A DNA stretch of 64,000 bases, taken from positions 868,001 to 932,000 of the forward strand of contig JANHCV010000001.1 in assembly GCA_025594325.1 (NCBI GenBank), read 5' to 3'. The notes beneath the pieces are model-generated. The model made no database searches. It was not told where the DNA came from and worked only from the letters and a program-made list of their open reading frames with translations. The position numbers and the translations under genes are program-made. Source of the DNA: Blastocladiella emersonii ATCC 22665. Its lineage: Eukaryota > Fungi > Blastocladiomycota. This document shows, one piece after another, positions 34,618 to 56,800 of the stretch (positions are counted from its first letter, which is position 1; each line of letters starts with the position of its first letter).

Positions 34618-37600
34618 TCAAAAATCGTGCTGCTGGAACCCCGCCTTCCCGCCGGGCCCGTACCCGGGCGGGAACCCGAACGTGGCCGACGTCGGAGACT
34701 GCATCCCCGCCATCTCCTGCGCCGCCGCCCCCGCCCCGACTGGGTCCGCCGACGCGACCGCGGCCGCGTGCCTCGCGAGCCCGGACCCCGCCAGAATCGC
34801 GGCCGCTGCCGCCGCCGGCACCGCGGCGGGCGACGTGGCGACGTCGATCCGCGTGATCGAGTTGCTCCGCGACGCGTGCGCGCTGGTCCGTGGCGACGCG
34901 GGCCCGCTCGGCGGTAGACCCGGGGGCGCGGGCGCCGGTGCGGGCTCGACGCTGACGAGATCCGCCGCGGAATCAATCTCCTCGGCGAGCGCCGGCGGCA
35001 GCTGGCCCTCGCGCAGCTGCGTCGCGAGCTCGGCCCACAGCCCGCGCAGCGCGGCCGCGTCGCGGCAGAAGGCGAGGAACGCGCCGCGCAGGGTGTCGGC
35101 GTGGGTCGCGGCCGAGACGGCGGCAGCCGCCGGCGTCGCTGTTGCAGCAGCAGAGGTGATGCGCGTGGGCGGCGGGACCACGGTCGTCAGGTACACGGGG
35201 TTCGGGATCCACAGGAGCCCGTCGGCGTGCGGGCGGAGCACGACGAACGCGGCGCCCGACCGGTGGATGAACTGCGAGTACTTCGCGTCGCGCCGCTCGT
35301 ACGAGTACCGCGTCGACCCCGCGGGGAACTTGTCGTCGGCCTCGATATCGAGCACGAACCCGAACCGCTTGACGAGCGCGGCCTCGTAGAACAGCGGCGA
35401 CCCCGCGGGCGGCGGCGGGTCGGTCGGCGGCGCCGCGGCGATTCGGACGACCGTGGGCGCGTGGAACGGGTTGGCCTCGTCGCGCTCGCGCAGCAGCTTG
35501 ACCTGGTCGATGGGCGCCTGCACCAGCCGCAGCCCACACTTTTCGCCGATCCGCGACCACTGCGTCAGCGTCTCGGCGATCCGCCACGTCGTGCAGTTGA
35601 GCCAGTGGATCTGCACCGAGTACGTGTGGTGCGGGTTGTGGTGCAGGTCAATGTGCAGGGTGGCGACCTGCCGCCGCTCCGATTTCTGTGTCAGGTCCAG
35701 GTTGATCTGCACCCGGCGCGACATGTCGACCGTCAGCACGGGCGCGGGAGGGTCAGAGTGCTGCGGCTCGGCGCCCGCTGACGCGAAGTGGTACCGGCCC
35801 GGCGCACCGCTGCCACCGCTCGCGAGACCCGCGCCCGAGGTGCCCGGGACCGTCGCGGCCGGCGTGAGCGTCGGACCCATGAACCCGACAATGTGCTGCT
35901 GCTGCTGCTGCTGCTGGGTTGCCGTCGTCGCGACCGAGCTAGCCATCACGCCAGGTCCCGCCGCCGCTACGGCAACGGTCGCCGTGGTCGAAGTCGACGT
36001 GCCGAGCCCGAGCTGCTGCGCCGCCGACGACACGTCCTGCGAGAAGGCGAGGTGGTGCTGCTGCTGTTGCGAGTGCGGCCGCGACTGCGACTGCGAATGG
36101 CCGCCAACGATCGCGCTGCCCGTGCTGCCCACAAGCCCGAGCCCGATGCCGCTCGCGTTGCTCTTACCCGTGCTGGTGCCGTGGTGGTGCGCGTGGTGGT
36201 GGTGATGATGGTGGCTGTGCGACGACGGGCCCTGCTCGTCACCACCGTTCGCCGACGCCGCGGCAGTCGCGGTCGTGGCCGAGGTGCTGCCCGTCAGCTG
36301 GCGCGACCGGAACCACCCGCTGCTGCTCCCGCCCCCACCCCCGCCGGCCGTCGCGTTGGCCGCCGTCGCCGCAGCCGCGCCCGCAACAGGCACGGGCGCG
36401 GTCTGGGACGAGTTCTCCTCGCCGCCGGAGCGCAGGTAAAGGTCGGACCGCAGGCGGTAAAAGTAGTGTCCGTCGAGGAACCCGTGGCGCTTGAGGACGT
36501 GGATGAAGATGCCGGCCTTGAGCAGCGCGTTGCCGAACGCGACCGCGTCCTCGCGCGTCTCGACGTCGGGCAGCGCGCGGAGCATCCAGTCGACGGCCTC
36601 GCTCCCAATGAACACGCGCTCGTACAGCTTGAGGTGCCACCGCCGGTCGCTGAACTTGACGCCGTGCGCCGGGTGCTGCATCGCGTACGCGATCGCCGTC
36701 GGCTTGCTCTCGCGCGACGGGCGCTCCGGCTGAATCCCGGCACTGCTCGCGCGACGCAGCGACTGCAGCGCGCTGCCGCTCCCGCCGCCAGAGCTGGACC
36801 CGTTCCCGTGCGCGAACAGCCCGCGCGTCGACACGCTGGTGCCTGCGAGCGGGTACCCGGCGGGCACGCCGGGCGGGGCGGTGGCGGCTGCCGCCGCAGA
36901 ACCCGCCCCCTCCTCGAGCTCGCGCTCGCGCGCGGCAATCTCGCTGCGGATGTGCGCGGACCGCGTCAGCGACGTGATCTGGACGCGCAGCGGGGTGCCG
37001 TCTGTGACGTGCTTTTGCATGGTCTCCATGAGCTTCATGAACCCGGCGATGCGCAGCTCCTCCTCGTCGAGCGAGTCGTCCTTGGTCGTGTTGATGGACG
37101 CCGGGACGTGGTCCATGGGGATGAACACGAACCGCGCCCGGAACATGTGGTACGTGTCCATGTCGTCGTCGTCGTCGTCGTACCCCGAGATCAGGTGGTC
37201 GACAAAGTTCCAGTTGAACATGGCCTACACGCGAGTCGTCCAGTGTGAGCTGACGAGGCTCGCCAACCCCCCGAAAAAAGAGAAGCGTACCAGCTGCGGG
37301 TAGTTGAACGTGGTCGACCGGTTGACAAACTGCGCCTCGTCGCGCGACCACAGGCTCATCTTGTACTGGATCGACCGCGTGAGGTAGTCGAGCCGGCGCA
37401 CGTACCGCTTCACCTCGACGCAGTGGTCGGCGCTGAGCGACAGCTTGTGCAGGTGGTGGCCCATGCTCATGAACGTGTCGCGCGCGACGCCGCCGCCGAG
37501 CCCGCTCGCCCCCGGCGCGTGCGTCGGGCCCGACGACAGGACAATCTGGAACCCCTGCGCGAGCCGCAGCGAGATCATCTCGGCGAGCAGCGCCTCGGCC

Positions 37601-40600
37601 GCCGCGACGCCCGGCGCGCTCTGCCCCGTCGGATCCGCAACGCTGCTGTTGCCAATGCCAATGCCGATGCCGCCGGCGGGCGCGGCCGGGTCGCCAAACT
37701 CGTTGGGCGACACCGTGTACGTGTACTCCTGGTACAGGTCCATGAGCTCCTCGGCGGTCGGGAAGCTGTCGGTGGTGATGGGCAGGCACGCCGGCGTGCA
37801 CAGCGAGTTCCACAGCGGCGCCGCGACCCGGTACGCCGCCGTCTGCGGGTACACGTGGTGCCACCGCTGCAGGTGCGACGACAGCTTGACCACGTTGCGC
37901 TTCGGGCTCCACGGGCTGATCAGGTTCGGCCGCAGCTGGATCGCGTAGTGCGACGCCGGGACCGCCGCGGGTTGATGCGAGCACTGCGACAGCGGCGGCG
38001 CCGGGTACAGCTGGCTCGTTGGGTTGGTGCCCGCGAGCCCGCCCGTGGCGACACCGCTCCCGCTCGCGCCGAACGCGCTCCCGCGCTGGCTGCTGTCGTT
38101 CATCCCCGCCATGCGCGTCAGCTGCGATCCGGCGAGGAACTGGTTCGCGCGGCGCGGACTCTGGCCCATGGGACTCGTCGGCCCGACCCCAACGCCCGCG
38201 CCCGAACCGGGTAGCCCGCCGCGCGTGACCGAGACGGGCATCGAGTGGTCGTCGGCGTCCGGGATCGGCTCGAGGTGCGAGTGGTACCCGCCGCCGCCGC
38301 CGCCGCCGCCGCCCGCCGCGGGCCCGATGACGACGCCGGGACCGGGCGCGGACGCCATCCCGCTCATGGCAGCCGCCGCGCCGACGCCCGACTCGTACGA
38401 CTCGCGGAGCCCGAGCCGCGCGTGCATCGACTCGTTGGTGCGGCGCGACGCGGCCATCTCGGCCATGGTCTCGAGCCCCGTGCGGCGGAACGAGTGCGCG
38501 GCCGCGGCGCGCGCCATGTACGACGCGGACGCCGGGCTGGTGCTCATGATCGGGACGTGCTTGGACCGCACCACGGGGATCAGGAGCGACGAGTCGCTGC
38601 TGGCGCGCGGCAGGTTGCCGTGCGGGCTGGTCGTCATGGTGAAGCTGGTCGACAGGTGCGCCGACGCGTTCGGGCCCGCGGCGCCGCCCACCCCGGTCCC
38701 AGCACCGCCGCCGCCGCCGTCCTCGTCGCTCATGACCATGGTGAAGGCCGAGTGGCTCGGCGGCCGGGTCGACGCGTCGAGGGCGAACCGCAGGCGGTAC
38801 ATGTTCTGCTTGAGGGCGGCGCCGCCGGCGGGGGCCTCGGGACGGCTGAAGATGGCGTCGTCGTAGCCCTCGAGGTCGGCGGGGTCGAGGTACGGCACCA
38901 CGGGGTTGACGCGCAGCTGGTCGACCGTGTTGAGCGTGAGCGACGGCATGCGGGCGCGCACGTTGAAGGCGAGCGGATCCGCCGCGTAGTAGTACGACAC
39001 GTCGATCCAGTCGGGCACCGTGAAGAAGAGGTACTCGGGGTTGTCCTCCTTGTCGTCGTCGTAGTAGACGGGGTCCCACGACTCGGCGCGGCGGTCCTTG
39101 GCGATGGCGGACCGGCTGGTGCGCGGCTCCTCGCCGTGGTGTTCGGCGTACGGGAACTTGGACGTGATGAGGAACAGCGGCGTCGCGTGCAGCGGCGGCG
39201 GCGACATGCACACGAGGTCGAGCGCCACGCCGTTGTCGAGCATCCGCTGCGTCGTGAGCCGCAGCAGCCGCTTGTCGGTCTCGAGGTACCCCGTGCCGGC
39301 GGTCACGATCTGGATCGACAGGCCCGTGCGCACGAAGTCGAGCTTGCGGTCGACGTAGTGCTTGTCGTGCGGGTTGAGGGCGAGGTTGACGGCCTCGAGC
39401 AGGTTGCCGAGGTGCGCGGGCGCGAGCTCGCCGCGGACCACGGGGACGCCGCCCTCGTTGACGAGCAGCGCGTTCGAGATGAAGCGGTGGTACTCGGCCT
39501 TGAGGTGGCCGAGCACCGTGGTCCAGTCGGCGCGCGTCTCGGCGTCGATCAGGACCTTGTACACGTCGCGGTACCGCTGCCCGCTCGAGCTGATGCTGAG
39601 CGGCGTCGCCGTGTAGCTGCTGTTGATGGCCTCGGGGAAGATGCGCGGCACGCCGTCGAGCGACGAAAAGTCGTAGTGGCCAAACGACGCGGCGCCCGAG
39701 CGGCCGAACCCGGGCGGCATGGTGCTGCTGGCGTCGGCGGCCTCGGTGGCGCGCACGCTCGCGTCGTCGTAGAGCACGCGGCTGAACAGGACGATGGTGA
39801 CGAGGTGGTTGACCTTGAGCGCGGTCCAGCGGGCGAACAGGTCGGGCAGGAAGTCGTGCACGACCTTCTCGAAGCACAGGTCGCTGTCGCCGTTGACAAA
39901 CTCGGTCATCTCGCGCGACAGCTGGAGCAGGAGGTAGACGTGGGCCGACTCGGAGCGGAAGATGGTCTTGGTCTGGTGCGTGATGTAGCCGCACGCGGCC
40001 TTGCGGTGGCCGCGCACGATCTCGCGGATGTGGACGCGCAGGCCGCCGGGGAACGACATCTTCTTGCTCGCGTAGACGCACTGGCCGACCATGGCCTGCT
40101 TGATGCGCCACATGTCGCTGCGGCTCATGTACTGGTCGCGGATGGCGAGTTCGACGTAGTCGGCCTCGACCGTCTCGGGGTTGATCTGTGCGGGTGTGTC
40201 GGGCGTCAGTTTCGGAGTCGCGCGAGTGGCACGTGGGAGGGGTCGTACCGGCCGAATGTGCACGTCGGTGCGAGCCTGGAACGAAAAGAGCTGGGCAATG
40301 TGGTTTGCGACGGAAATCTGTACACGGTGGAGCGCAGTTAGATCTACCTTCGAGGTACCGAGGCAAGGCATGGCGTACCTGCAGCTGACCCTTGCCGGTC
40401 ACGTCGTAGTCGGCGACCTGCAGAACCAGCGCCTGGTCCGAGACCACGGGGCCCTCTCCAGCCGCGGATCCGCTCTGCCCAGCGGCGCCCGACGGGTGGT
40501 AGATCTCGACGAGCGAGCCGGGGCGCAGGTTCGGGAAGATCTCGTGGTTGAGGATCAGCTCGTGGCGCGAGAACCGCTCATCGTGCACCCACAGGTTGTA

Positions 40601-40789
40601 GCACTTGGGTTGCGGAACCGGTGGGGCCACAGGAGCGGCCGTTGGCGCGGGCGCTGTGTTACCCGCGGCCCCAGGTGCCGGGCTCGCCGCGCCCGCGCCG
40701 GCGGGAACGGTGGCGGAGGTCACGGCTGCGTCATCATAGTGCAGGCGGCCGTCCGTTGCAGCAGGTGGGGGCCCGCCGTATGCATGCAT
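34618..40789 (-). CDS. IML1: GATOR1/SEACIT subunit Iml1/DEPDC5, full length, multi-exon
   Basis: YNLWVHDERFSRHELILNHEIFP, ELAIRDQYMSRSDMWRI, TIFRSESAHVYLLLQLSREM, GNLLEAVNLALN, LWNSLCTPACLPITTD, RLAQGFQIV, DEP domain DRRWHLKLYERVFIGSEAVDW, C-terminal YIHRSG-like QFIHRSG. Confidence 0.95.
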
Positions 40790-40839
40790 GGGAGTGTGTG
40801 GGCTCGCGTGCGGGGGAAGCGCCAAGAGGCGAACGCGCT

Positions 40840-41287
40840 CGCCGCCAAATCGAGCAGCTCTCAGCCTCTCACGTGACCAAAACGCGTCACGCGTTATTCT
40901 TTTTTTCCTGTTTCGCGCCTCAACGTCGACGCGGCGCGCTCCGAACTCCCCCGAAGAAACTTCCAGTGTGCAGTACTTTGCCCAACGCGAAAATCAAACG
41001 TCAGTGTAACACCGCGGTCCACCAAGTTTAATGGTTGCAGAGGTTGTTCAGAGTCGGGGTACACGGTCGGCGAGACGGTTGCTGGGGTTGAGCTCAGAGC
41101 TCAGCGTGCGGCAGGCACCTGCTGAAAGCGTCGCGGCCTGAGCCCTAGTAAACGAGCCACTACGTGCGCAAACAGAATATGGACACAGTCTTGCATCTCC
41201 CTTCAGTCCGTCAGATGGGGTATGCTGCGCCGGACGTGATTGGGTGTGACGCGTGCACGAGCTTACAGGGTTTCGAGTCCCCTGCAC
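40840..41287 (+). repeat. Left arm of a diverged ~440-bp inverted repeat (also the IML1 upstream/promoter region)
   Basis: Aligns in blocks with the reverse complement of 47975-48407, e.g. CTCTCAGCCTCTCACGTGA.CAAAACGCGTCACGCGTT, GGTTGCAG.GGTTGTTCAGAG.CGGGG, CTACGTGCGCAAACAGAATATG, GGGTTTCG..TCCCC. Confidence 0.9.
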
Positions 41288-41630
41288 GCGGCTACACTCA
41301 ATCACGGATCGTACGTGGCCAATTCAACGTCTGCACAGATATTTTGTTTTCCTTCCGGGTACTACTGGACGCTAAAACGCTGTATTTTTCCCCTGACACG
41401 ATGTGTCATCTCTTTAGTCGGTTTGTGCATGTCGTTGCCTTTAGGCGGGCTCGAAAAGTGATGGGAGCACGCGCGGGATCAGCGACAGTTCACAGTTTCA
41501 TAGTAGGTCGCCACGTGTCGCCACGTATGAGGCGACAACGTGGCTGCTCTCGACCGCGCGCCCATTCACGACTTCGCTCGCGATCCCATCGTGCGGTGCT
41601 GCCGAATTCAGCGAGAATGCAAAGTCGACT

Positions 41631-43223
41631 CTATTCCTTGCTCCAGAGGTCGTCAACGACGATCACCACCATGCTCAGAACACGCTCGCGGAGCTTCAGG
41701 CTCAACCCTTCGAACAACATGTTGAGTACGTTTCTGGCCGACTCCACGACACTCGATCGAGCGGGCATCGCGTCCAGACGAGTCTGGATGGGCTTGAGGT
41801 CATAGAACACTCGGTGCTTGTTGGGCCGCCACTCCAACCGCGCCTCGCGCATGGCAGCGACGATGGTCTCGCCGAGTGCGTACGGGTGGAACATGAGCGG
41901 GCACGAGTCGCGCGGGTGGACGTGGCTGGACGGCGGGCACAGGTCGACGAATTTCTTGCAGAACCAGCACCCGCGTTTCCAGTCCGCTTCGACGTAGCCG
42001 CACGCCCTTGCTTCAAAGGCAACCTTGGACAAGAAGTTGCTCATGTGCGCGACCGTGCCGTCGGGGTGCCACAGGATGTTGTTGACACCGCGCGGGCTGG
42101 GGCTCAAGTAGTTGAGCAGACGTTCGGCAAAGCATAGGCGCAACGGCCACGTTTGCTCGAGTTTATCGGCTTCGCCAGGTGCGGCTTCTTCAAGCAGCGC
42201 GTGCCACTTGGCGTAGTATTCGGGGATCAACATGCCAGGCACCCGCGGCAAGTTGAGAAACCGCGCGGCCCAGTCGCGGCGACCTGGATCCGCCGGGTTG
42301 ACCGAGTCGAGGAAGACGCGCTCCGCCTGCTCGTCCGACATGCTGGTGCGGAGAAAGACGGCGTAGACGTGGTAGACGCGCCATGGAACGTTGGAGCTGC
42401 ATGCGAGAAGCGCGAGCGCCAGCGTGACGGGCCGCGGATAACAGTCGCGCGATGCTGCGGCACGGCGAAGCCATTTGATGAACTCGCGGGGGTCGGTGGT
42501 GGAGGGATGCGGCGAGGTTTCCTTTTGCCGGAAGGTGGGACCATGATCGCGCATGTAGTGAAAGAGCTCGCGCAAATCGTACAAGCGAAGCTCATGGCCT
42601 GGTCTTTTGCTCGGGGAGCGGTGCCGACGCGACGAGCGGGTACGGGAGCCGGAACGGGCACGAGACCGAGAGCGTGCGGGTGAGCGCGACCGTGAGCGCG
42701 ACCGTCTTCGGGGAGAGCGACGTGCGGACCGTGAGCGCGACCGTGAGCTCGGCCGTCTGCTGGACGAGTGACGCGCAGACCGAGAGCGCGACCGCGACCG
42801 CGAACGGCCGTCACGAGATGAATGCGATGGACGATCGCGGGTCAAAGATTGGGATCGAGCTCGATACTTTTGCAGGTCGTCCTTTGATTGCGCTGGAGAA
42901 TGGGATTGAGTTCGATCCAACGGAAGCTGCGTCCGATCAACCGGCGCAGATATGCGTGTAAGCTTGTTGTCATTGGCAATCGAAACATCACTGCTCCGTT
43001 TGGGGTAATCATTACCTGGATGATCCAAGGCGGCCACAGCGCATTCCAACTTCTCGACGTCACTCGTGAGTTGCGCATATCTCTGCTTCATAATTGCAAG
43101 TTCGTTGCCACCGGTAGGTAAGTCGCGCATTCGCAAGAGAAGTTGAATTGACTGAACGCGCAAGTCGAGAAGTTGCTTTAACGAGTTTTCGTGATGCTCG
43201 CGACTGCGGTTCGAAAGCGTCAT
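41631..43223 (-). CDS. Stand-alone retrotransposon Gag-like protein (coiled coil, RS-rich linker, capsid-like region, expanded Zn knuckle)
   Basis: Intronless 530-codon ORF (first ATG 43223) with codon usage unlike the flanking housekeeping genes. DPREFIKWLRRAA and NLPRVPGMLIPEYYAKWHALL resemble Gag capsid motifs. CWFC-x13-H-x4-C knuckle-like motif. No pol nearby. Confidence 0.55.
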   Translation of the reverse strand: MTLSNRSREHHENSLKQLLDLRVQSIQLLLRMRDLPTGGNELAIMKQRYAQLTSDVEKLECAVAALDHPGNDYPKRSSDVSIANDNKLTRISAPVDRTQLPLDRTQSHSPAQSKDDLQKYRARSQSLTRDRPSHSSRDGRSRSRSRSRSARHSSSRRPSSRSRSRSARRSPRRRSRSRSRSPARSRSRARSGSRTRSSRRHRSPSKRPGHELRLYDLRELFHYMRDHGPTFRQKETSPHPSTTDPREFIKWLRRAAASRDCYPRPVTLALALLACSSNVPWRVYHVYAVFLRTSMSDEQAERVFLDSVNPADPGRRDWAARFLNLPRVPGMLIPEYYAKWHALLEEAAPGEADKLEQTWPLRLCFAERLLNYLSPSPRGVNNILWHPDGTVAHMSNFLSKVAFEARACGYVEADWKRGCWFCKKFVDLCPPSSHVHPRDSCPLMFHPYALGETIVAAMREARLEWRPNKHRVFYDLKPIQTRLDAMPARSSVVESARNVLNMLFEGLSLKLRERVLSMVVIVVDDLWSKE

Positions 43224-43573
43224 GAACGGCCGCGAGCCGCCGCGGCCGTCCGCCAAAGCAGCTCAACTAGCGGATTGCATGGAGTTTCGTTGCGATACAT
43301 GGTCGTTCATCTATTGGCCTGGAAGCGAGCGCGCGCGACAGGGCGCGTCGCGCTTCTGGTCGAAGCAAGGCGGCTACCCTCACGTGATATCGAAACGCGT
43401 CGATCGAGCGCAGACAGGGGGGCTGGCGCAGATGTGATCCGCGTCGGAAGGCGAGCCGTGAGGCGCTGCTCTCGAGGCACAGTAATCAGCACTGCAGACG
43501 GTCTGAAGTCGTTAGGCGGCCAGTGTCACAAGTTCTCAAGTTGTGTATGGTTCACTCGCACTTCACAGCTCCA

Positions 43574-44827
43574 TCAAAGGTCGACCGACTCCTCGCTCAT
43601 AGACGTCCCGACCCAGTCCCAGATCCGGTTCGCGCCGAGGTTATGCGAAAAGTAGGGCCGCATCACGTCGGCGCCCACGACGGCCAGCTCCTGAGTCTCG
43701 GGGTTGACGACCTGGCCCGCGCCGTCATTCATGCCCAGGTACAGGAACATTTGCGGCGGGAGCCGCGTCCACGGCTTGAGTGGCGACCCCTGGATGTCGG
43801 CGACGACGTTGTCGAGCGCATGGCGGGCCTGGCCCCACGCGACGTATCCCATCTTCACGTCGGTCGTCTTGGCCACGTTGCCCACCGCGTACACGTTGCC
43901 GAACGTTGAGTCCTCGATCTGCAGCGTCTCGCGTACCTTGACGAACTTGGTCGCCTCGTCGACCGACTGCGGCGACAGCGTCGCGAGCGCGTCGCTGTTG
44001 GGCTTCATGCCCGTACACAGGAGCACGAGGTCGACGCCCGACGCGAGCACGCTACCGTCCGTCGCCTTGACCTCGATCGGCGCCTGCCCCACGTCGGCGA
44101 GTGACGCGGACTTGGCCCACTCGGGCACCGTGCTCAGGTCGACGCGCTTCTCCATGACACGGACCACGCCGAACTTGTCCAGGATCGCGCACGCGGCCTC
44201 GGCGAGCTCGGGCTTGTAGTCTGGGAGGTAGCTCGCGCGCGAGTGGACCAGCGTGACGGCCGTCGACGGATAGTGCTCGCGGATCTCAGCCGCCAGCTCG
44301 ATGCCTGCCGCACCGCCGCCAACGACCACGACCGACGTGGCCGCCGCGATGCGAGCCTGGTACGCGGACAGCGCCGCGAGGGCCTCGGTCTTGGTGTCGT
44401 GCGATGACAGCGTGCACGGCTCCGGGTGCGTCGTTCCCGCCGCATAGATGAGGTACGAGTACGGGATCTCAACGATCTCGGGCTCCGAAGCACCATCGCC
44501 CGCCACCACGACACGGATATGCGTGGCCGTGATCGACTCGGCCGTGCCCTGGACGAACACGCCGCGCGCCTCGTCGCCGCCGAAGATGTTGTTGTACGGC
44601 GCGAACAGCTCCTTTTCGAAGCCGGCCACCACGCTCGCCCGCGGGAACGTGTACATGTAGTGCATGTGCGAGTGCTTCTCGACCAGGACCACGCGGTAGG
44701 GCGACGGGAGCCCGCCCATGTCGCGCAGCTTGACGCAGAGTCCGACGCCGGCGCACGAGCCGCCGATCACGACCACGTTCTTGTACTGGGCGTCGACGGC
44801 GGGATGGTCACTGGTGGTGATGGTCAT
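43574..44827 (-). CDS. AIF/AMID(FSP1)-like FAD-dependent pyridine nucleotide-disulfide oxidoreductase
   Basis: Intronless. VVVIGGSCAG FAD site, YSYLIYAAGT, VVVVGGGAAGIELAAEI, VTLVHSR, LLCTGMKPNS, VKVRETLQI...NVYAVGNV. Confidence 0.88.
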   Translation of the reverse strand: MTITTSDHPAVDAQYKNVVVIGGSCAGVGLCVKLRDMGGLPSPYRVVLVEKHSHMHYMYTFPRASVVAGFEKELFAPYNNIFGGDEARGVFVQGTAESITATHIRVVVAGDGASEPEIVEIPYSYLIYAAGTTHPEPCTLSSHDTKTEALAALSAYQARIAAATSVVVVGGGAAGIELAAEIREHYPSTAVTLVHSRASYLPDYKPELAEAACAILDKFGVVRVMEKRVDLSTVPEWAKSASLADVGQAPIEVKATDGSVLASGVDLVLLCTGMKPNSDALATLSPQSVDEATKFVKVRETLQIEDSTFGNVYAVGNVAKTTDVKMGYVAWGQARHALDNVVADIQGSPLKPWTRLPPQMFLYLGMNDGAGQVVNPETQELAVVGADVMRPYFSHNLGANRIWDWVGTSMSEESVDL

Positions 44828-45302
44828 TGCGATGATGGGCGTTTGACTAGCCAGGTCACAGATGCGCGACACGGGGCCTTCTTGAGTGAACCCTCGTCAT
44901 CGCGCGTGTGCGCTCGCAGTGGTTATCGTGGGATCAGAAATGAAGCGGACACCGAGGGCGCGGACCTGACGGTGCACCACCTCGCACCGCGAGCCACATC
45001 GGGAGAATTCGAAAACAACGACGCGTCCGACGCGTTATGTTGGAACATCTGATCTACCCGTTTCTCTCCTCGAATCGGATACACGGAAAAAAATGCTCGG
45101 CCCTTGTGGCCTTGCTTGCTTGAAGCGATGTGGATGCTGTTGATGCAGCAAGTGGAGTTTGAAACGACCTTCACTCGATCGAAAGGAGCGCGCTTACATT
45201 TCCATCAGATGCGCGCGGCGGCCGATACAGTACAAAGCGCAGTTCTACCCTCTTAAACCCGGACGTGCTGCTCCTCTTTCATCCCGCCCAACGACTACCA
45301 CC

Positions 45303-47183
45303 ATGTCTCACGAAAAACATGCATCCGACACACGCACGGCCGCGGCCACGGTAGACGCCCCGGGCAGCGTGCGCCGCATGGCGGTCATGGTCAAGTCGTG
45401 GTCCAAGCGCGACCTCTATGTCGTCTTTGCCGGGATCTTTGCCGTCGCCCTGTTCCGGACGCTGGCCGGCAGCATGGAGGTCACGGCCGAGCCGTTTGTC
45501 CTCAGTTCGTTCGGCCAGCACGACATGACGGCCGTGCTGCCCGTGTTCTCGAGTATTCTCGGCACGCTCACGTATCCTATCGTGAGTAAACTGCTCGACG
45601 TCTTCGGCCGCCCCGAGGTCACTGTCGTCTGCATCCTCTCTTACGTCGCCGCGCGCCTGCTACGCGGGATCGCCGGCTCGGTCTGGGTCTTTGCTGTACG
45701 ATTCGGTCTTGTCTTTCTCGTCTTACTCTCCCTCGCTGACTCATGCTCACGCCTAGTCTTCGGTGTTCTTTGACACGTTTGCCGGCTCTGGCATGTACCT
45801 GGTCACGCAGATTCTCATCGCAGGTGCGGAACGTTCAGCTCGCCCGTATTGTGCGCGCTCCTGACTGACGCGTTTGTTCAACAGATTCATCGTCGCTCGT
45901 CAACCGTGGTCTCCTCTCCAACATCGTGAACCTGCCGTTCCTCTTCACGGTCTTCATCGGTCCTCCCATCGCCAGCGCGTTTCTGACTTTGTCGTGGCGC
46001 TACATCTACATTTTCTCGGCCATCATCGTCCCGATCTCGGCGGCGCCGCTGCTGTGGAAGATGTTCGCCACGGACGCGCGCCTTCGCAAGTCAGGCGAAA
46101 TCGACGAGACCATGACCTGGCGCCATGCTTACGATGGCTTGACGCTCGCCAAGACCCTCGTCCGCCAGCTTGATCTGCCCGGCGTCGTGCTTCTTGCCAT
46201 TGGTCTCATTCTCTTCTTTCTCCCGTTCCTCATTGGCAACAAGATCGGCGGCTTCAGCAACGGTACGCCTTTGCATACCATCTCCCGCAATCGTGTAATA
46301 GCTAACCTCCACGATCATCCCGTCATGAATAGGTGGCGTCATTGCCATGCTCGTCATTGGTCTCGCGTTCCTGGCCTGCTTCATGATCTGGGAGATCCGA
46401 CACGCGCCGACCCGCGGCTACACGCCCATCATGCCGATCGAGTTTCTCACGACCCGCACGGCCATCGGGTCCATGATCACCATCTTCTTCGTCTTCATCG
46501 ACTACTACCTGTACCACACGTTCCTGCTCAGCTACCTGCGCGTGACCCGCCAGATGCCGTACGCGACGGCCGGGATCATTGACCAGCTCTACAGTCTTTG
46601 CTCGTCCCTCGCCGCCGTCTTCACCGGGGTCCTGATCAAGTACACGAGGCGGCACCGCATCTTCACGTACATCGGCATCGCGCTTCACATCACGGGCGTG
46701 GGCATGATGATCGCGTATCGTGGCCCTGACTCGACCGACTTCCAGTACGTTCTCAGCCAGTCGATTGCGGGCGTGGGCGGCGGCTTCCTCGTGTGCTCCG
46801 TCATGGTCGGGCTGCACGCGTCGGTCCCGCGCGAGTACATTGCCTCGACCACCACGTTCTGGCTGCTCATGTCGGGCATCGGCGGGTCCGTGGGCGGCGC
46901 GATCGCGAGCGGGATCTGGAACAACATGTTGCCCGGGCAGCTCCGCGCGCTGGTGCCGAACATCACCGAGGACGAGCTGGCGCTGATTCTTGGCAGCATC
47001 GAGCACATTCTCGAGCTGCCCGTTCCGGTCAAGGCCAGCGTCATTGAGGCGTACGTTCAAGTGCAACGGTATCTCTCGATCGGCGCTATTGTCGCGCTGG
47101 TGCCCGCAGTTCTTGGCGTGTTCGCGATCAGTTCGCACAGCCTCGAGGAGACGAACTCAGAAGTGACGGAGAGCAAGGAGTGA
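45303..47183 (+). CDS. Siderophore-iron transporter (MFS, ARN/Sit1/MirB family), multi-exon
   Basis: SWSKRDLYVVF, PFVLSSFGQHDM, YPIVSKLLDVFGRPE, VFIGPPIA, LDLPGVVLLAIGLILFFLP, SIGGSVGGAIASGIWNN, VIEAYVQVQR, consistent with 14-TM fungal siderophore transporters. Confidence 0.85.
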
Positions 47184-47974
47184 TGTGTGTGCTGGTATTC
47201 ATATAGATTGTGCTGGAGCTCTCCGAACAAGTTGACAGTTGAGTTGCAGATCTCGATGGACCTTGTAGACCTGTACGCAAACTCACCGCTGGTACGAGAA
47301 GCTCCAGCCGGTCGCAACCGAGGACGCGTTCCGTCCCGTAAGACGTGCGGTAATGGAAGAAACCTTTCTCCAAACGCATTTGTTGCGGAAGAGATAGACG
47401 CCCCATGGGTGCGGCTCAGAGAGTGCTAAGATCTGCTTGATAGTTTTTACGAGTGAAGGAAATACGCTGTGGGCGCTCGGAACTTTGTGATCAAGTCAAG
47501 TTCTCGATCAAACGATGGCGGGGCACGGGTGGGTGCCTATGAGTTTGTGATTGCACGGCACGTCTCTTCATTAATCAACGCTCTAACCTGCTACCACGTG
47601 AAGAACGAGTTTCTCGCTCCAACCTTGCTGCAACAACGACGGAATAACGCGATCGACTCTGATCACGTGTGTGGCGCAACGCGTCTTCGACGCGTTTCCT
47701 CCGACCCACTCGCGAGCGATCAAAAATTTGAAGCTGGAGCAGAGTAGGTTTTTGCAAAACATCAAGAGCTAGCGAAGTAGAATTTGAATTAACAGGGCGG
47801 AGGAAAACGTATCAATCAAGCTGGTTTGACTGAGGGCCAAGCATGAAATCTCAAGGGCCAAGCATGGGAGTTCAAAGCAACGTGACGTCAAGATGCCGGG
47901 GGAAAAAATAGATCACCCCGGGGCAAAATTATCTGCCTCGCGGTGAGCAGTGACCACGTCAGTCCGACTAATTT

Positions 47975-48407
47975 AGTTGGAAGAATGCAGGGGGATCCGA
48001 AACCCAGTGTTGGTCTGCACTCATCAACCATTTCATCGTCCTACGGAGTGTACTCCACCTTGCAGACTGCTCATAGGTACATATTCTGTTTGCGCACGTA
48101 GCGCTGTCACGCTCGCAAGCGCTCAGGCAGCGACGCCTTCAGCCTGCCGCATGCTGAGTTCAAACCCAGCAGCAGTCTCGCTGACCAAGTGCCCCGGCTC
48201 TGAACAACCACTGCAACCGCCGAATGTGGTGGACCGATGATTACGATTAAGTTTTTTCCTATTGACAAACTGCCGCACGCTGTGGAGTCAAACTGAGACG
48301 TTTGGGGGTTCGGAGCGGGCCGCGTCAATGTCGAGACACGAGACAAGAAGGAACGCGTGACGCGTTTTGCTCACGTGAGAGGCTGAGAGCCGTTTAATTT
48401 GGCGGCG
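47975..48407 (-). repeat. Right arm of the diverged ~440-bp inverted repeat (inverted copy of the IML1 upstream region)
   Basis: Reverse complement aligns with 40840-41287 with many substitutions and indels (roughly 65-75% identity by eye). Confidence 0.9.
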
Positions 48408-49705
48408 CGTCCCTGAGGTTTTGATTATACTTGAGGCACCTAGACGCATCGCGTCTGGTTTTCAATCGAGGGCTAAAGTCCGCGCCACGTTGAGCGCTTG
48501 CGCCGTTTCGCACGTCGCAGCTTTGCACGTCGCAGCTTTGCGGGTCACAGCACAGCGCGTTCCCTCAAAAACCAGTCCTTGCGCATCAAGGAGTGGCGGC
48601 GGCGGTGGCCGCGGGTCGAGGGTCGCGGCGTATCATGAGTAATACATTGATATCATTCTATTAAACCAATCGGGATACCTATCAGGGGGGGGGCATGAGC
48701 TATCTGGGAGCGCGCCGCGGACCAAACCCGACCCTTGCGTCAAACCTTGCGTTGATTGCGGCGTCAGGCATGGCACCAGGTCCAACGTCCAACCGAGACG
48801 TCCATCCTGCCCAAACCTGGCGTCAGCCCTCGCGTCGCGACCCTCGCGTTGGACCTGACGTCACGCACGGCGCCAGACCCCTCAAGCTGGAAGCCGTTTT
48901 GGCGATACCATGATGACCTGCTTTGCAACTTCCGTGTCCACGCACCAACACCTTCATGAATGCAGGCGTGATGACGCCCCTGCTCCAACTTCACCAATTC
49001 TGGCCCAGCACATGTTCCATAGGAACGTCATGGCGGATCCACTTTGTCCACTCTCACATCATAGCACCATACCTGGGCTACCCAAAAGCCTAGATTGTCA
49101 ACTCCCGTGGGTCTGCTGTGTCATGGCACATGTGTTTTAGTCCACTCTCGCTTCCCTTCTTCACATACACGACAGAAACGGGGATCTTGTCCGCTGTAAA
49201 GAATTCAATTCAAGTTATGTAACTTGTCATATGCTTTGCCGCTCAAAACCCTCCATATTGTGTTCCTGATGGGCCGTTAATGGGTCGCTTGATGCTGATG
49301 AGACTTGAAGTGTTTGAGGTCGGACATTTGAGCCCGCGGGCTATGACTTCACTTTCGTACAGTGAGCAGGACCCTGATAACCTACTTCAAACTTTCGGTC
49401 TAGCCACACAGGTACTTATTCAAAGTTTGTTACTTATAACCAGTCCGCCAGGTGGAGCACACCACGGTGCTCGATTGCGGGACCAGCATGCGCTTTGATA
49501 GACCGGGTTTCGAATCCGCGTGCGCGCTCTGGTGCCGACAGATCGTTCAGCGTGGCCAATGCTCACCAACGGGGGATACATTTTTCTTACATTCACCTTT
49601 TTTTCTCTCCTCCCCATCCCGCCCCTAAATCAAAACATCGTCCACAATTAATCCAACGTGCTGCACGTGTCAGGGGAGGTCCGAGTGGGTCTCATTGCCA
49701 GTATT

Positions 49706-52700
49706 AGGCTCGCACCGACGTGCACATTCGGCCGGTACGACCCCTCCCACGTGCCACTCGCGCGACTCCGAAACTGACGCCCGACACACCCGCACAGATC
49801 AACCCCGAGACGGTCGAGGCCGACTACGTCGAACTCGCCATCCGCGACCAGTACATGAGCCGCAGCGACATGTGGCGCATCAAGCAGGCCATGGTCGGCC
49901 AGTGCGTCTACGCGAGCAAGAAGATGTCGTTCCCCGGCGGCCTGCGCGTCCACATCCGCGAGATCGTGCGCGGCCACCGCAAGGCCGCGTGCGGCTACAT
50001 CACGCACCAGACCAAGACCATCTTCCGCTCCGAGTCGGCCCACGTCTACCTCCTGCTCCAGCTGTCGCGCGAGATGACCGAGTTTGTCAACGGCGACAGC
50101 GACCTGTGCTTCGAGAAGGTCGTGCACGACTTCCTGCCCGACCTGTTCGCCCGCTGGACCGCGCTCAAGGTCAACCACCTCGTCACCATCGTCCTGTTCA
50201 GCCGCGTGCTCTACGACGACGCGAGCGTGCGCGCCACCGAGGCCGCCGACGCCAGCAGCACCATGCCGCCCGGGTTCGGCCGCTCGGGCGCCGCGTCGTT
50301 TGGCCACTACGACTTTTCGTCGCTCGACGGCGTGCCGCGCATCTTCCCCGAGGCCATCAACAGCAGCTACACGGCGACGCCGCTCAGCATCAGCTCGAGC
50401 GGGCAGCGGTACCGCGACGTGTACAAGGTCCTGATCGACGCCGAGACGCGCGCCGACTGGACCACGGTGCTCGGCCACCTCAAGGCCGAGTACCACCGCT
50501 TCATCTCGAACGCGCTGCTCGTCAACGAGGGCGGCGTCCCCGTGGTCCGCGGCGAGCTCGCGCCCGCGCACCTCGGCAACCTGCTCGAGGCCGTCAACCT
50601 CGCCCTCAACCCGCACGACAAGCACTACGTCGACCGCAAGCTCGACTTCGTGCGCACGGGCCTGTCGATCCAGATCGTGACCGCCGGCACGGGGTACCTC
50701 GAGACCGACAAGCGGCTGCTGCGGCTCACGACGCAGCGGATGCTCGACAACGGCGTGGCGCTCGACCTCGTGTGCATGTCGCCGCCGCCGCTGCACGCGA
50801 CGCCGCTGTTCCTCATCACGTCCAAGTTCCCGTACGCCGAACACCACGGCGAGGAGCCGCGCACCAGCCGGTCCGCCATCGCCAAGGACCGCCGCGCCGA
50901 GTCGTGGGACCCCGTCTACTACGACGACGACAAGGAGGACAACCCCGAGTACCTCTTCTTCACGGTGCCCGACTGGATCGACGTGTCGTACTACTACGCG
51001 GCGGATCCGCTCGCCTTCAACGTGCGCGCCCGCATGCCGTCGCTCACGCTCAACACGGTCGACCAGCTGCGCGTCAACCCCGTGGTGCCGTACCTCGACC
51101 CCGCCGACCTCGAGGGCTACGACGACGCCATCTTCAGCCGTCCCGAGGCCCCCGCCGGCGGCGCCGCCCTCAAGCAGAACATGTACCGCCTGCGGTTCGC
51201 CCTCGACGCGTCGACCCGGCCGCCGAGCCACTCGGCCTTCACCATGGTCATGAGCGACGAGGACGGCGGCGGCGGCGGTGCTGGGACCGGGGTGGGCGGC
51301 GCCGCGGGCCCGAACGCGTCGGCGCACCTGTCGACCAGCTTCACCATGACGACCAGCCCGCACGGCAACCTGCCGCGCGCCAGCAGCGACTCGTCGCTCC
51401 TGATCCCCGTGGTGCGGTCCAAGCACGTCCCGATCATGAGCACCAGCCCGGCGTCCGCGTCGTACATGGCGCGCGCCGCGGCCGCGCACTCGTTCCGCCG
51501 CACGGGGCTCGAGACCATGGCCGAGATGGCCGCGTCACGCCGCACCAACGAGTCGATGCACGCGCGGCTCGGGCTCCGCGAGTCGTACGAGTCGGGCGTC
51601 GGCGCGGCGGCTGCCATGAGCGGGATGGCGTCCGCGCCCGGTCCCGGCGTCGTCATCGGGCCCGCGGCGGGCGGCGGCGGCGGCGGCGGCGGCGGGTACC
51701 ACTCGCACCTCGAGCCGATCCCGGACGCCGACGACCACTCGATGCCCGTCTCGGTCACGCGCGGCGGGCTACCCGGTTCGGGCGCGGGCGTTGGGGTCGG
51801 GCCGACGAGTCCCATGGGCCAGAGTCCGCGCCGCGCGAACCAGTTCCTCGCCGGATCGCAGCTGACGCGCATGGCGGGGATGAACGACAGCAGCCAGCGC
51901 GGGAGCGCGTTCGGCGCGAGCGGGAGCGGTGTCGCCACGGGCGGGCTCGCGGGCACCAACCCAACGAGCCAGCTGTACCCGGCGCCGCCGCTGTCGCAGT
52001 GCTCGCATCAACCCGCGGCGGTCCCGGCGTCGCACTACGCGATCCAGCTGCGGCCGAACCTGATCAGCCCGTGGAGCCCGAAGCGCAACGTGGTCAAGCT
52101 GTCGTCGCACCTGCAGCGGTGGCACCACGTGTACCCGCAGACGGCGGCGTACCGGGTCGCGGCGCCGCTGTGGAACTCGCTGTGCACGCCGGCGTGCCTG
52201 CCCATCACCACCGACAGCTTCCCGACCGCCGAGGAGCTCATGGACCTGTACCAGGAGTACACGTACACGGTGTCGCCCAACGAGTTTGGCGACCCGGCCG
52301 CGCCCGCCGGCGGCATCGGCATTGGCATTGGCAACAGCAGCGTTGCGGATCCGACGGGGCAGAGCGCGCCGGGCGTCGCGGCGGCCGAGGCGCTGCTCGC
52401 CGAGATGATCTCGCTGCGGCTCGCGCAGGGGTTCCAGATTGTCCTGTCGTCGGGCCCGACGCACGCGCCGGGGGCGAGCGGGCTCGGCGGCGGCGTCGCG
52501 CGCGACACGTTCATGAGCATGGGCCACCACCTGCACAAGCTGTCGCTCAGCGCCGACCACTGCGTCGAGGTGAAGCGGTACGTGCGCCGGCTCGACTACC
52601 TCACGCGGTCGATCCAGTACAAGATGAGCCTGTGGTCGCGCGACGAGGCGCAGTTTGTCAACCGGTCGACCACGTTCAACTACCCGCAGCTGGTACGCTT

Positions 52701-53506
52701 CTCTTTTTTCGGGGGGTTGGCGAGCCTCGTCAGCTCACACTGGACGACTCGCGTGTAGGCCATGTTCAACTGGAACTTTGTCGACCACCTGATCTCGGGG
52801 TACGACGACGACGACGACGACATGGACACGTACCACATGTTCCGGGCGCGGTTCGTGTTCATCCCCATGGACCACGTCCCGGCGTCCATCAACACGACCA
52901 AGGACGACTCGCTCGACGAGGAGGAGCTGCGCATCGCCGGGTTCATGAAGCTCATGGAGACCATGCAAAAGCACGTCACAGACGGCACCCCGCTGCGCGT
53001 CCAGATCACGTCGCTGACGCGGTCCGCGCACATCCGCAGCGAGATTGCCGCGCGCGAGCGCGAGCTCGAGGAGGGGGCGGGTTCTGCGGCGGCAGCCGCC
53101 ACCGCCCCGCCCGGCGTGCCCGCCGGGTACCCGCTCGCAGGCACCAGCGTGTCGACGCGCGGGCTGTTCGCGCACGGGAACGGGTCCAGCTCTGGCGGCG
53201 GGAGCGGCAGCGCGCTGCAGTCGCTGCGTCGCGCGAGCAGTGCCGGGATTCAGCCGGAGCGCCCGTCGCGCGAGAGCAAGCCGACGGCGATCGCGTACGC
53301 GATGCAGCACCCGGCGCACGGCGTCAAGTTCAGCGACCGGCGGTGGCACCTCAAGCTGTACGAGCGCGTGTTCATTGGGAGCGAGGCCGTCGACTGGATG
53401 CTCCGCGCGCTGCCCGACGTCGAGACGCGCGAGGACGCGGTCGCGTTCGGCAACGCGCTGCTCAAGGCCGGCATCTTCATCCACGTCCTCAAGCGCCACG
53501 GGTTCC
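49706..53506 (+). pseudogene. IML1: Inverted, 5'- and 3'-truncated genomic copy of IML1/DEPDC5 (mid-exon 2 to the end of the DEP domain, introns retained)
   Basis: Reverse complement of 36477-40277; the coordinate sum is 89983 at both ends, so there is no net indel over 3801 bp. The only difference I found is the synonymous TCG/TCA at 38446/51537. No native start; the frame ends in a novel 35-aa tail with stop at 53613. Confidence 0.93.
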
Positions 53507-54768
53507 CCGCCGTGATTTTCCCTGCTACATATACTTTATCTTGTTGCTTAACTCGTAATGTGACTCGGGAAGCGCGACGGGTGGGCAGTTGGTGCGCTGG
53601 TTGCCAAGGTTAGTCGGCGGTGGGGTGATCAGCCGCAAGCTAGCGCCGCCGCGTGTCGATCTGAAACGATCTGTGTTCGAGTACCCGCTGATCGCGTCAC
53701 TCATCAGCGGCGACGCGACGCCCACAAATCACTGGCTTCTACCGCGTCGAGACAACGATCCAATTGTACAATTCAACTCTTATGATCAAGTCTACGGCAT
53801 GCGGATCTGTGCGGTAATAGCGATCATCTCACAGTCCCACTTGGTGACCTTCACGCTCGCGCCGCGCGGACAGCGAAGGACATGGAGCTTGCACATGCTC
53901 TCTCGAGCAAACCGACTCATGATCTATGTTGCGTCCGGCCGCCGCGATGGAGACGACGAGAACGACGAGGGTCAAACGTTTGCGCAGCGGATCGCGTTGG
54001 CCATGAGCCTCCCACGCGATGGTGCGATTGAGGTCGTTGAGCACAGCGCCGCCAGATAAGCTTACTGGTGCAGCTCGAGTGGCTAGCCCCGGTCGCGGAC
54101 CCTCTGATGAAGTTGAAGGGAAGAGTGACACCCGCCTGCGTGTAACCGAGACGCAAAATTCCCGAGAGGCAGCGGGCGCCGCTAGCCGGCGGGCGCCTCG
54201 AGCGAACAGACGTGTATACGGTGGTGGCTGAAACGCTGCTGATGTAGACGTCGTCGTCCGCTGAGGCAACGATCCCGCGCGTGTTGGCAAAGCGTGGGCC
54301 GAACGTATGCCACGAGGGGTCGGCCGTGGCCTTGGGTGGTCCGTGCTGGGTCGCGAAGCGGTCCCACTCGGCCGAACCTAGAAGCGCGTCGGAGCCTTCG
54401 CCTGATGCTACCAGCCCGACCAGATGCAGCGCGGTCGTGTAAGCCATAGCATGCACCCGTGGATGAGCGCGTCGCGCGGGAGCGGGTCGTTTGCCAGGAC
54501 CGTCGCGCGGGCGTGCTCAAGCGACTACCGGATCACGTCGCCGTCCACCACAACCGATTTACTACTGCGGATCGAGCATCTCGCTGTGTGGTGCGCCTGC
54601 TGGAGGTACGCGGCCGCAGCAGCGAGCGGTGCTTACGGAAGAACAAGATCATTTAGGAAACTCAGCGAACTGTTTATAGCGGGACAACAGTCTCACAATC
54701 TCCATGCGCGATAACGCGCGCCGTCATCGTCGGGAGCAGGTGGATTCTCCAGGAGATGATCTGGGCCA

Positions 54769-56800
54769 TCATGTTGCCGCGGCTCCTGCGACTGGCGCGG
54801 CTGATGGCAATGTTGGGTGCGGGCCCGGCTCTGCGGGCGGTTCTGGGCCTCGTCTCGGCGGCCCCCGGCGCGTGGGCGCAAGCGGGCGCACACGTTCGGC
54901 ACGGCGGCGGCGGTACCGAGCGTTGCGGTGCGGCGTCAGGACCCGGGCGTCGGCCCGGGACTGGACGAACGGCGCCCACGCGCGCGAGTGCAGCAGCGAC
55001 GCGGCGATGTCGTACAGCTGAGCGGCGGGGCGGCTCGGGGACGAGAGCGGGTGGGTGGTGCGCGGTCGCAGCGGCGGCGGCCGGACTGCGCAGAAACTCG
55101 CGCACGTGTGCGCCGCGCCGCGCCGCGCCGCGCGTGATGACGCAGGCGGACAAACGGGGCGCGGTGGCGTCGGGCAGGTCGAGAAGCGGCGGGAAGTTGT
55201 CCTCGGGGACGGGCAGGTCTGCCCTCCTTGCGTCGCGGCGTGCGATTGCTCAGTCGGTGAGCCCCGCGACGGGGGCCGCAAACGATGCGTCGCGGTCGGC
55301 GCGCAGCGTGTTGATGTCGAGGTGCACGGCGTGCAGCAGGTCGGGGCCGAGCAGCGCGTCGACCAGCGCGCCGGCGGCGGGAGACCAGTGCGGCGTTGTT
55401 CTTGGCCGCGTCGACGGATGTGAGCTGGCTGGGCCACGACTCGGCGATCTGGTCGAGCGTGTTGATGCGCTGCTCGTCCGTGGTCGTGCACTGGAACCAG
55501 TGGAACGGCGTGTCGAGCAGGCCGCACGAGCACCGAAACGGCTTGAAGTTGGCGTCCCAGCACGCAGGGCAGCGGTCCTCGGGGTTCTCGAGCGGGGCGC
55601 ACTCGGCCCTGCCGCAGGAGGGCACAGCGATGCGGCCGACCGAGTGCAGCGACTCGCGGCACGGCAGCTCGCGAGGTGCGGCGCGCGAGCGGGCGCGACC
55701 CGCCGTGGAGCGCGAGCGCGGTCGCCTCCCAGTCGAGCTCCTCGGCCTGGGCGGCGGCGGCGTTCGCGGCTGCTACAGCGGCGGCTGCGCGAGCTTGAGG
55801 TGCGCCATGTCCTCGGCGATCACCGCGTAGCGGCACTCGGCCTGCGCGAGGTCGCACGTGAAGTTGCGCGGGTCGCCGCAGATCTCGTGCCTGGAGAAGG
55901 CGAGGACGTGGTGGAGGTCCGACTCGGTGCGCGTGCGTTAGGAAAAGTACGCGTCGGACGGCAGGTTCGCCGCGGCCGTGGCGGCGCGGCCGACGACCTT
56001 GTCGGGCGTGGTTCGGTTGTCGGCGTGGCTGCGGACCCACGAGAAGGTGACCCGTGATGCTGCGGTCGCGCAGCGCGCAACGCGAGGCGGAGCGCGGACC
56101 ACAGGTCGCTCGACGCGCACCGGACGCGCTGGCGCACCGTCGCGGTCGGCGAGAGCTGCGTGCGCGCGGCCTTGATGGTGGCCTCGATGGCGTCCTGCGA
56201 GTCCGAGTAGATGTGCAGCGCGGTCCCGGCGGGGACCTGCGACACGGCGAGGACGAACGCGTGGGTCTCGGCGCGCGTCGACGAGAGCGGGCCGGGCGGT
56301 AGCTCGGCGGCAGCGATGTGGCCCATGTCGTCGTCCATGACGCCGTTGGCGGCCGCGCGGCACTCGGCAGCAAAGCGCGTGGCCGTGTCGTAGCCGTCGG
56401 GCAGCGGGAACACGGCGGCGAAGCCTGCGCGCGCGCGACGCCCTCGGGGCCCGGGCGGTCTGTGTAGTACGAGCCGTCCGTTTACGCGACGACGACGTTG
56501 CCCGGGGTGGGCGGGATCTCGAACCCGACGGCTTAAGGGACCCACTGGTGCATCACCGCCGATCCGCGCGGCGTCCGAGTTGGCGTGGCGCAGCGCCAGC
56601 GCGACGACGCTGACAATGTGCGTGATGCTCGGCAGCGGTTGCTGGCCGGGCCCGAGCTCGCCGCGCACGACTGGTTGTTCATTTCGAGGCGCCACCGCGG
56701 CGGCGAGGGTCGCATCGTGAGCACACTGCTCCACTTGTCGGCACGACCGACCTGCATCATCATACAGCCCGACGACAGATGCACGTCTTAGCTCCATGTC
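54769..56800 (-). mobile_element. Decayed, 5'-truncated non-LTR retrotransposon (RNase H + C-terminal zinc finger of ORF2)
   Basis: VVVA*TDGS (YTDGS with TAC>TAA), AGFAAVF, SSTRAETHAFVLAV, LHIYSDSQDAI, FSWVRSHAD, then CPAC...DTPFHWFQC. Several stops and frameshifts. No RT domain seen. Confidence 0.8.

Follow-up and report, generated by a model that had tools for sequence, protein, structure and literature searches.

The IML1 locus of Blastocladiella emersonii ATCC 22665 contains the middle 3.8 kb of its gene twice, in opposite orientations and almost without change, which raises the question of whether the locus acts as a genetic switch or has simply come to carry an inverted duplication. The locus is located in a stretch of 64,000 nucleotides (contig JANHCV010000001.1, positions 868,001 to 932,000), referred to below as the window, whose own numbering is used unless contig positions are given. 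A sequence-only reading of the window had proposed that recombination between the two copies inverts the DNA between them and thereby toggles Iml1, the GATOR1 subunit that represses TORC1, between a full-length and a truncated form. We favor another reading, to which we give about an even chance of being correct: the locus is an old inverted partial segmental duplication, with arms homogenized by gene conversion, which would flip only passively and is not an evolved switch. Nothing marks the IML1 locus as such a switch.

Base-by-base comparison showed that positions 36477-40277 pair with 53506-49706 as the reverse complement over 3801 bp, with one mismatch (38446/51537), corresponding to 3800 identical bases of 3801 (99.97%). 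A repeat search of the whole window returned one inverted pair, at 36471-40277 / 49706-53512. The arms enclose a core of 9428 bp (40278-49705), so that the arms, the single synonymous difference and the 9.4-kb core described previously were all recovered. At both arm ends the similarity falls abruptly to chance, and at the outer end 4 of the next 6 bases match. When the genome (32.65 Mb, 21 contigs) was searched at the DNA level, the arm was found in exactly two copies, both at the IML1 locus. The left arm (36477-40277, minus strand) extends from codon 151 of IML1 (second base, in exon 2) to codon 1374, introns 2 and 3 included, and comprises the PF12257 IML1 domain (171-498), the long middle of the protein and positions 1-62 of the 72 positions of the DEP profile. 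The right arm (49706-53506, plus strand) is its reverse complement and lacks exon 1 as well as the C-terminal 619 codons. The sole difference between the arms, at 38446 on the minus strand (partner 51537), is a synonymous CpG transition at the third base of codon Ser740, which reads TCG in the left arm and TCA in the right.

The intact gene (34618-40789, minus strand) corresponds to the GenBank protein KAI9188891.1 of 1993 amino acids, which maps exactly as four exons (40789-40379, 40317-40249, 40185-37291 and 37224-34621, followed by the stop codon). Its introns measure 61, 63 and 66 nt, each of the form GTACG...YAG, and the in-frame TAG at 37225-37227 is located in intron 3. Its assignment to IML1/DEPDC5 was borne out by the Pfam domains IML1_N, IML1, DEP and DEPDC5_CTD and by matches to structures. 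The intact protein (P0049) was found to possess an N-terminal double-psi beta-barrel (PF23013/PF24438, residues 62-159, E values of 1.6e-12 and 2.2e-14), followed by PF12257, which is present in both copies with 311 bits (cut-off 26.2), a DEP domain at 1313-1383 of the left copy (84 bits) and DEPDC5_CTD (28.3 bits against a cut-off of 27). The PDB chains of DEPDC5/Iml1 that match it include 9xzy_H (E value of 1e-188), 8adl_W of yeast Iml1 (1.6e-106) and 6ces_D (1.6e-99). In the whole genome, the Pfam IML1 domain is confined to the two arms and no second IML1 paralogue was found; since the domain occurs nowhere else, the locus is, as judged by domain content, a single GATOR1/SEACIT Iml1 gene with one partial copy.

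At the inner end of the right arm, its junction with the preceding spacer forms a TAG codon in the IML1 frame (49705-49707, plus strand), at a position where the original has CAG (Gln151), and the frame of the right copy is thus closed from upstream. At the outer end, the arm can be read in frame into the unique right flank (53507-53613, plus strand), which encodes, except for its first base, a 35-residue tail (PAVIF...CQG) with its stop codon at 53611-53613; beyond the corresponding end, the original IML1 reads on as LDGHYFY.... As the arm ends at codon 1374/1375 of 1993, the loss of about 619 codons, the 35-residue tail and the stop at 53613 that had been predicted all proved correct. The right copy is without the N-terminal barrel domain and the C-terminal domain, and its DEP domain is cut at profile position 62 of 72. 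Sensitive blastn and tblastn searches identified neither a remnant of exon 1 upstream of the right arm nor residual homology past the outer arm ends of the IML1 pair. Introns 2 and 3 are kept in the right copy and are identical there, which shows that the duplicate was made at the DNA level and rules out a processed retrocopy. Capture by a transposon of the Pack-MULE or Helitron type was also ruled out, given that the arm is present in only two copies and that no terminal repeats, direct or inverted, and no target-site duplication were found in the arm junction sequences.

A diverged trace of a larger duplication may be present next to the right arm. The IML1 upstream region (40840-41184, minus strand; 52-396 bp 5' of the ATG) has an inverted copy at 48077-48407 (plus strand), with 72% identity over 345 bp (E value of 1e-47). 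This copy lies 1.3 kb before the right arm and precedes it in the same order and orientation in which the original precedes the left arm; no further copies of either member were found in the genome. Matches within the pair are arranged in blocks, with exact runs of 20, 20 and 16 bases, and CACGTG and ACGCGT are among the shared blocks, which may be conserved promoter elements or conversion patches. The copy is followed by a spacer of 1299 bp (48408-49705, plus strand) that stands where the original has 563 bp, namely, the 5' untranslated region, exon 1, intron 1 and the start of exon 2. Dispersed repeats occupy 48424-48565 (more than 40 copies) and 48606-48907 of the spacer, the first of them beginning 17 bp past the end of the upstream homology, and the remainder is unique. 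The 72% remnant suggests an older, larger duplication, the arms of which would have been equalized by gene conversion. It also modifies two statements of the sequence-only reading. Exon 1 and the start of exon 2 are located at the left end of the core as stated, but the claim that the only IML1 promoter lies there is not strictly true, since a diverged copy of the upstream region exists at the right end of the core. Likewise, the dead duplication that had been mentioned as a simpler explanation fits best, whereas its description as very recent is made doubtful by the colinear remnant.

The IML1 pair is not the only structure of this kind on the contig. We compared 264 kb of contig 1 (668001-932000) with itself and considered repeats 1 kb or longer. 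With a threshold of 95% identity, three inverted pairs only were detected, all of them 99.8-99.97% identical, and no direct repeat of that length and identity was found in the 264 kb. All remaining repeats are at most 80% identical and mostly represent direct tandem gene families; the identities are thus bimodal, with nothing from 81% to 99.7%. Of the two other pairs, that at C1:733717-742036 / 757971-766289 has 8.3-kb arms of 99.95% identity and a 15.9-kb spacer. Within each arm, two tandem paralogues share just 72% identity, far below the identity between the arms. The pair at C1:804942-813496 / 858163-866717 (99.9%, 8.6-kb arms, 44.7-kb spacer) ends 1.3 kb before the window; the sequence immediately to the left of the window recurs in inverted orientation, 100% identical, at a distance of 44.7 kb. 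Diverged colinear homology (71-80%) was found 30-600 bp beyond the outer arm ends of this pair, with the result that two of the three high-identity inverted pairs show such homology beyond perfect arms. Comparable repeats nearby over unrelated sequence indicate that the structure arises from a genome-wide process. The data point to a process, acting genome-wide, that makes inverted duplications and probably holds them identical, and the IML1 pair would be one of its products.

The G+C content at third codon positions (GC3) reaches 96.5% within the arm portion of IML1, compared to 88.4% for the remainder of the gene (Fisher p of 7e-12). Because the genes neighboring IML1 have GC3 values of 82-96%, with two of them reaching 95.5-95.7%, the high GC3 of the arm, which would fit GC-biased gene conversion, is no more than suggestive of it.

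In the course of events that we propose, the starting point would be an old inverted duplication, 4.7 kb or more in length, that took in the IML1 upstream region. The exon 1 segment of the copy would later have been replaced by 1.3 kb of other DNA with small dispersed repeats, and this break in homology would have shut conversion off from the upstream remnant, which could then have drifted to 72%. The arms would have been kept, or lately made, identical via arm-to-arm gene conversion. Homologous recombination between them may at times lead to crossing over and so to inversion of the 9.4-kb core, and such an inversion would split IML1 into a C-terminally truncated gene (1374 amino acids plus the 35-residue tail) and a headless 3' part; we read this possible split as a passive liability of the structure. 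What is observed comprises the repeat with its junctions, the identity and exon content of the gene, the diverged remnant and the presence of further such repeats nearby, and it is from these that we infer the age of the duplication, gene conversion and possible flipping. Several points weigh against this reconstruction. The four junctions and the orientation are those given by the assembly, the GC3 contrast is confounded by position within the gene, and the identity distribution is that of three repeats only. The lack of an exon 1 remnant in the spacer means that an older duplication needs an extra replacement event. That the right copy is a dead fragment is, likewise, something that we infer. 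Furthermore, the sharp drop from 100% identity to none at both arm ends also fits a single very recent 3.8-kb insertion, in which case the 345-bp remnant would be an unrelated older repeat.

Such an insertion is possible, although somewhat doubtful. An internal 3.8-kb piece of IML1 would have been copied in inverted orientation, in one very recent step, into existing intergenic DNA (between 49705 and 53507), either during break repair or through a template switch in replication, and too recently for divergence; the 345-bp pair of 72% identity would be a separate, older inverted repeat that may have brought both sites together. The abrupt loss of identity at both arm ends without microhomology beyond 4 of 6 bases, the single difference in 3801 bp and the spacer without an exon 1 remnant agree with this scenario, as does the observation that unique local DNA makes up both a portion of the spacer and the right flank over its first 1.3 kb. 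However, an older copy of the region upstream of the inserted piece would, by coincidence, already have been present 1.3 kb from the insertion site, with matching order and orientation. The neighboring pair likewise combines perfect arms with a diverged extension, and three pairs that are all above 99.8%, with none between 81% and 99.7%, would be odd for independent events of random age. An artefact, in which the second arm or its linkage was made by the assembler or by chimeric molecules, is unlikely and has only a slim chance. Fold-back chimeras yield palindromes without a 9.4-kb unique spacer, which counts against an artefact, and the one-base difference between the arms indicates that they were not simply copied. 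A heterozygous simple inversion would place the right end of the core against the right flank or the reverse-complemented left flank, never against an arm, and could therefore not give the spacer/arm junction. The assembly was generated with LJA from PacBio HiFi reads at 190x coverage with a mean read length of 10.5 kb (PMC9730499), compared to arms of 3.8 kb. LJA uses 5001-mers from the reads and drops low-coverage paths, and a 5001-mer covers the whole arm plus 1.2 kb of flank. Some room for a systematic cause is left by the unusual frequency of near-perfect inverted repeats in this assembly. The assembly also underwent heavy post-processing, which included the reduction from 247 contigs to 21 via purge_dups and manual removal and Pilon polishing with 65-bp reads (PMC9730499).

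The proposed switch is correct in its premises. A crossover between inverted repeats does flip the intervening DNA, as had been stated (PMC6895784), and the predicted products of an inversion agree with the exon map, the arm content and the read-through tail: codons 1-1374 with the 35-residue tail would be expressed from the flipped promoter and exon 1, and the 3' part would then lie behind the diverged copy of the upstream region. The geometry thus allows a switch, and given that IML1 is single-copy, a flip would have a phenotype. What we consider very improbable is that arm recombination flips the core often and usefully enough to constitute a bet-hedging toggle between intact Iml1, with TORC1 repressible, and truncated forms, which would alter TORC1 control, for example, that of starvation-induced sporulation. 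A phase-variation-like nutrient switch found no support. Pfam scans of the long open reading frames (ORFs) of the core and flanks identified an oxidoreductase, an MFS transporter and a weak RNase H match but no recombinase in or beside the core; there is no site-specific recombinase and there are no short recognition repeats at the locus, the arms consist of ordinary coding sequence, the fragment lacks its head and has a TAG at its junction, and the flipped state would destroy the sole IML1. Also against the idea are the similar duplications nearby over unrelated sequence and the single unbroken 5.1-Mb contig, assembled in one orientation with arm-spanning 5001-mers. A near-equal mix of orientations would leave a tangle or a contig break, and a rare flipped state would be erased by error correction; the unbroken contig therefore speaks against two orientations of nearly equal abundance. 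Since the four local junctions do not differ between the assembled and flipped states, only molecules spanning a whole arm separate the two, and the RNA-seq junction between LKRHGF and PAVIF that had been suggested as a test would not tell them apart. We attach the same very low probability to the core flipping at a measurable rate in the multinucleate thallus, with nuclei toggling between intact Iml1 and the split pair. If true, toggling nuclei would amount to heritable, reversible variation in TORC1 repression and hence in the decision, triggered by starvation, on whether to sporulate. This would be a eukaryotic counterpart of phase variation that operates without a recombinase.

The right copy itself appears to be a non-functional, headless fragment. 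In GenBank it is represented by the model KAI9188895.1 (1225 amino acids; 49123-53664, plus strand), derived from the same 5,142,960-bp contig as KAI9188891.1. Its first exon has 9 nt (ATGGCACAT, 49123-49131) and is followed by a 666-nt intron, the exons 49798-52692 and 52759-53511, and a last exon of six codons (53644-53661) before a TGA. The genome was annotated by funannotate with ab initio predictors (PMC9730499), and the model is therefore taken as no evidence of expression. There is, nevertheless, a small chance that the right copy is an expressed paralogue, transcribed from the diverged copy of the upstream region and encoding a truncated Iml1 (the PF12257 domain, the middle and most of DEP), which might be a decoy for partners of that Iml1 region. 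Apart from the existence of the model, this is favored by a frame that is intact over 1216 codons, being identical to its parent, and by the upstream copy, which keeps exact-identity blocks, CACGTG and ACGCGT included, that cluster above shuffles. In human DEPDC5, SABA, which binds NPRL2, and SHEN, which contacts RagA, are located between the N-terminal domain and DEP (PMC8534245); this order implies that the arm should contain their equivalents and that a truncated product could in principle disturb the complex, although such interference is speculation. Against an expressed paralogue, the model is an ab initio prediction that relies on a 9-nt first exon and a 666-nt intron, compared to 61-66 nt for the introns of the parent, and the junction TAG shuts the frame. 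The open frame is explained by identity alone, because the introns are identical too, and the block clustering is inflated by indel columns. KAI9188895.1 bears the name "vacuolar membrane-associated protein iml1"; as it rests on the duplicated fragment, it inflates the apparent IML1 copy number, and this second "iml1" protein could mislead gene counts.

Several known systems resemble the IML1 locus in part. The Hin/Gin systems, fimS, the Bacteroides invertons and 2-micron FLP combine short specific repeats with a dedicated site-specific recombinase, whose gene is usually close by, and they function in both orientations. The IML1 locus resembles them in having a segment between inverted repeats whose orientation sets what is expressed, but its repeats are 3.8 kb of coding DNA, it has no recombinase, and one orientation would destroy a gene of an essential pathway. 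In plastid genomes, homologous recombination between long identical inverted repeats flips a single-copy region, and the resulting isomers are near-equimolar and neutral and split no gene. Long identical inverted repeats bounding a unique region are shared with the IML1 locus, where, in contrast, a gene is cut by the arms and the unbroken assembly speaks against both orientations being equally abundant. Among fungi, Candida albicans possesses dispersed long repeats, many of them inverted, and homologous recombination at these repeats gives rise to inversions and other rearrangements (PMC6895784). The IML1 arms are likewise long repeats in a fungal genome; however, the inversions of C. albicans were seen directly by comparing isolates, whereas one orientation is known for the IML1 locus. 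A further resemblance is to the palindromes of primate sex chromosomes, such as P6 of the human Y, in which inverted arms of more than 99.9% identity (99.97% at IML1) surround a unique spacer. In primates, this identity is ascribed to GC-biased gene conversion from arm to arm, with tracts of several kilobases, and inversions of the spacer do occur but are rare (PMC3723533, PMC8981503). The raised GC3 of the IML1 arm and a diverged remnant that hints at an age beyond that of the arm divergence may be further likenesses. In contrast to the primate arms of tens to hundreds of kilobases, those of IML1 measure 3.8 kb; they are located in an ordinary gene-dense fungal contig, and the arm is a gene fragment, whereas primate arms carry whole testis-expressed genes.

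Taken alone, the IML1 locus is a curiosity, in that the sole GATOR1 Iml1 gene of a model zoosporic fungus would be broken by a single crossover. Of broader interest is how often near-perfect inverted duplications occur in this genome, with three in 264 kb, in the absence of any high-identity direct repeat. If this is confirmed, B. emersonii would offer a compact system for studying how palindromes form and how their identity is maintained outside sex chromosomes.

The core contains several further features. At its left end, the 5' end of IML1 is represented by the whole of exon 1 (40789-40379) and 40 nt from the start of exon 2 (40317-40278), both on the minus strand, together with the upstream region. 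An ORF of 541 codons (41631-43256, minus strand), previously labeled gag-like, has no Pfam match, and its paralogues, of 66-73% identity, are concentrated on contig C20. It is followed by a pyridine-nucleotide-disulphide oxidoreductase (43574-44872, minus strand), an MFS transporter (about 45159-47183, plus strand) and 2.5 kb of non-coding DNA of lower G+C content (47184-49705). A tRNA-like sequence in the spacer, GGTTTCGAATCC, was ruled out as a tRNA or other RNA gene, as ARAGORN and Rfam returned no matches. The dispersed element at 48424-48565, approximately 137 bp long, has more than 40 copies, which are 85-98% identical; several of its copies elsewhere precede tandem sub-repeats with a spacing of 30-45 bp. 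A further dispersed repeat, similar to long interspersed nuclear elements (LINE-like; 54788-56532), lies 1.3 kb to the right of the right arm, has a weak RNase H match and is present in at least 15 copies of 77-87% identity. Several of these copies were found within 10 kb of contig ends (C2:5241, C21:6423 and C6:7451), so that this repeat may be associated with chromosome ends.

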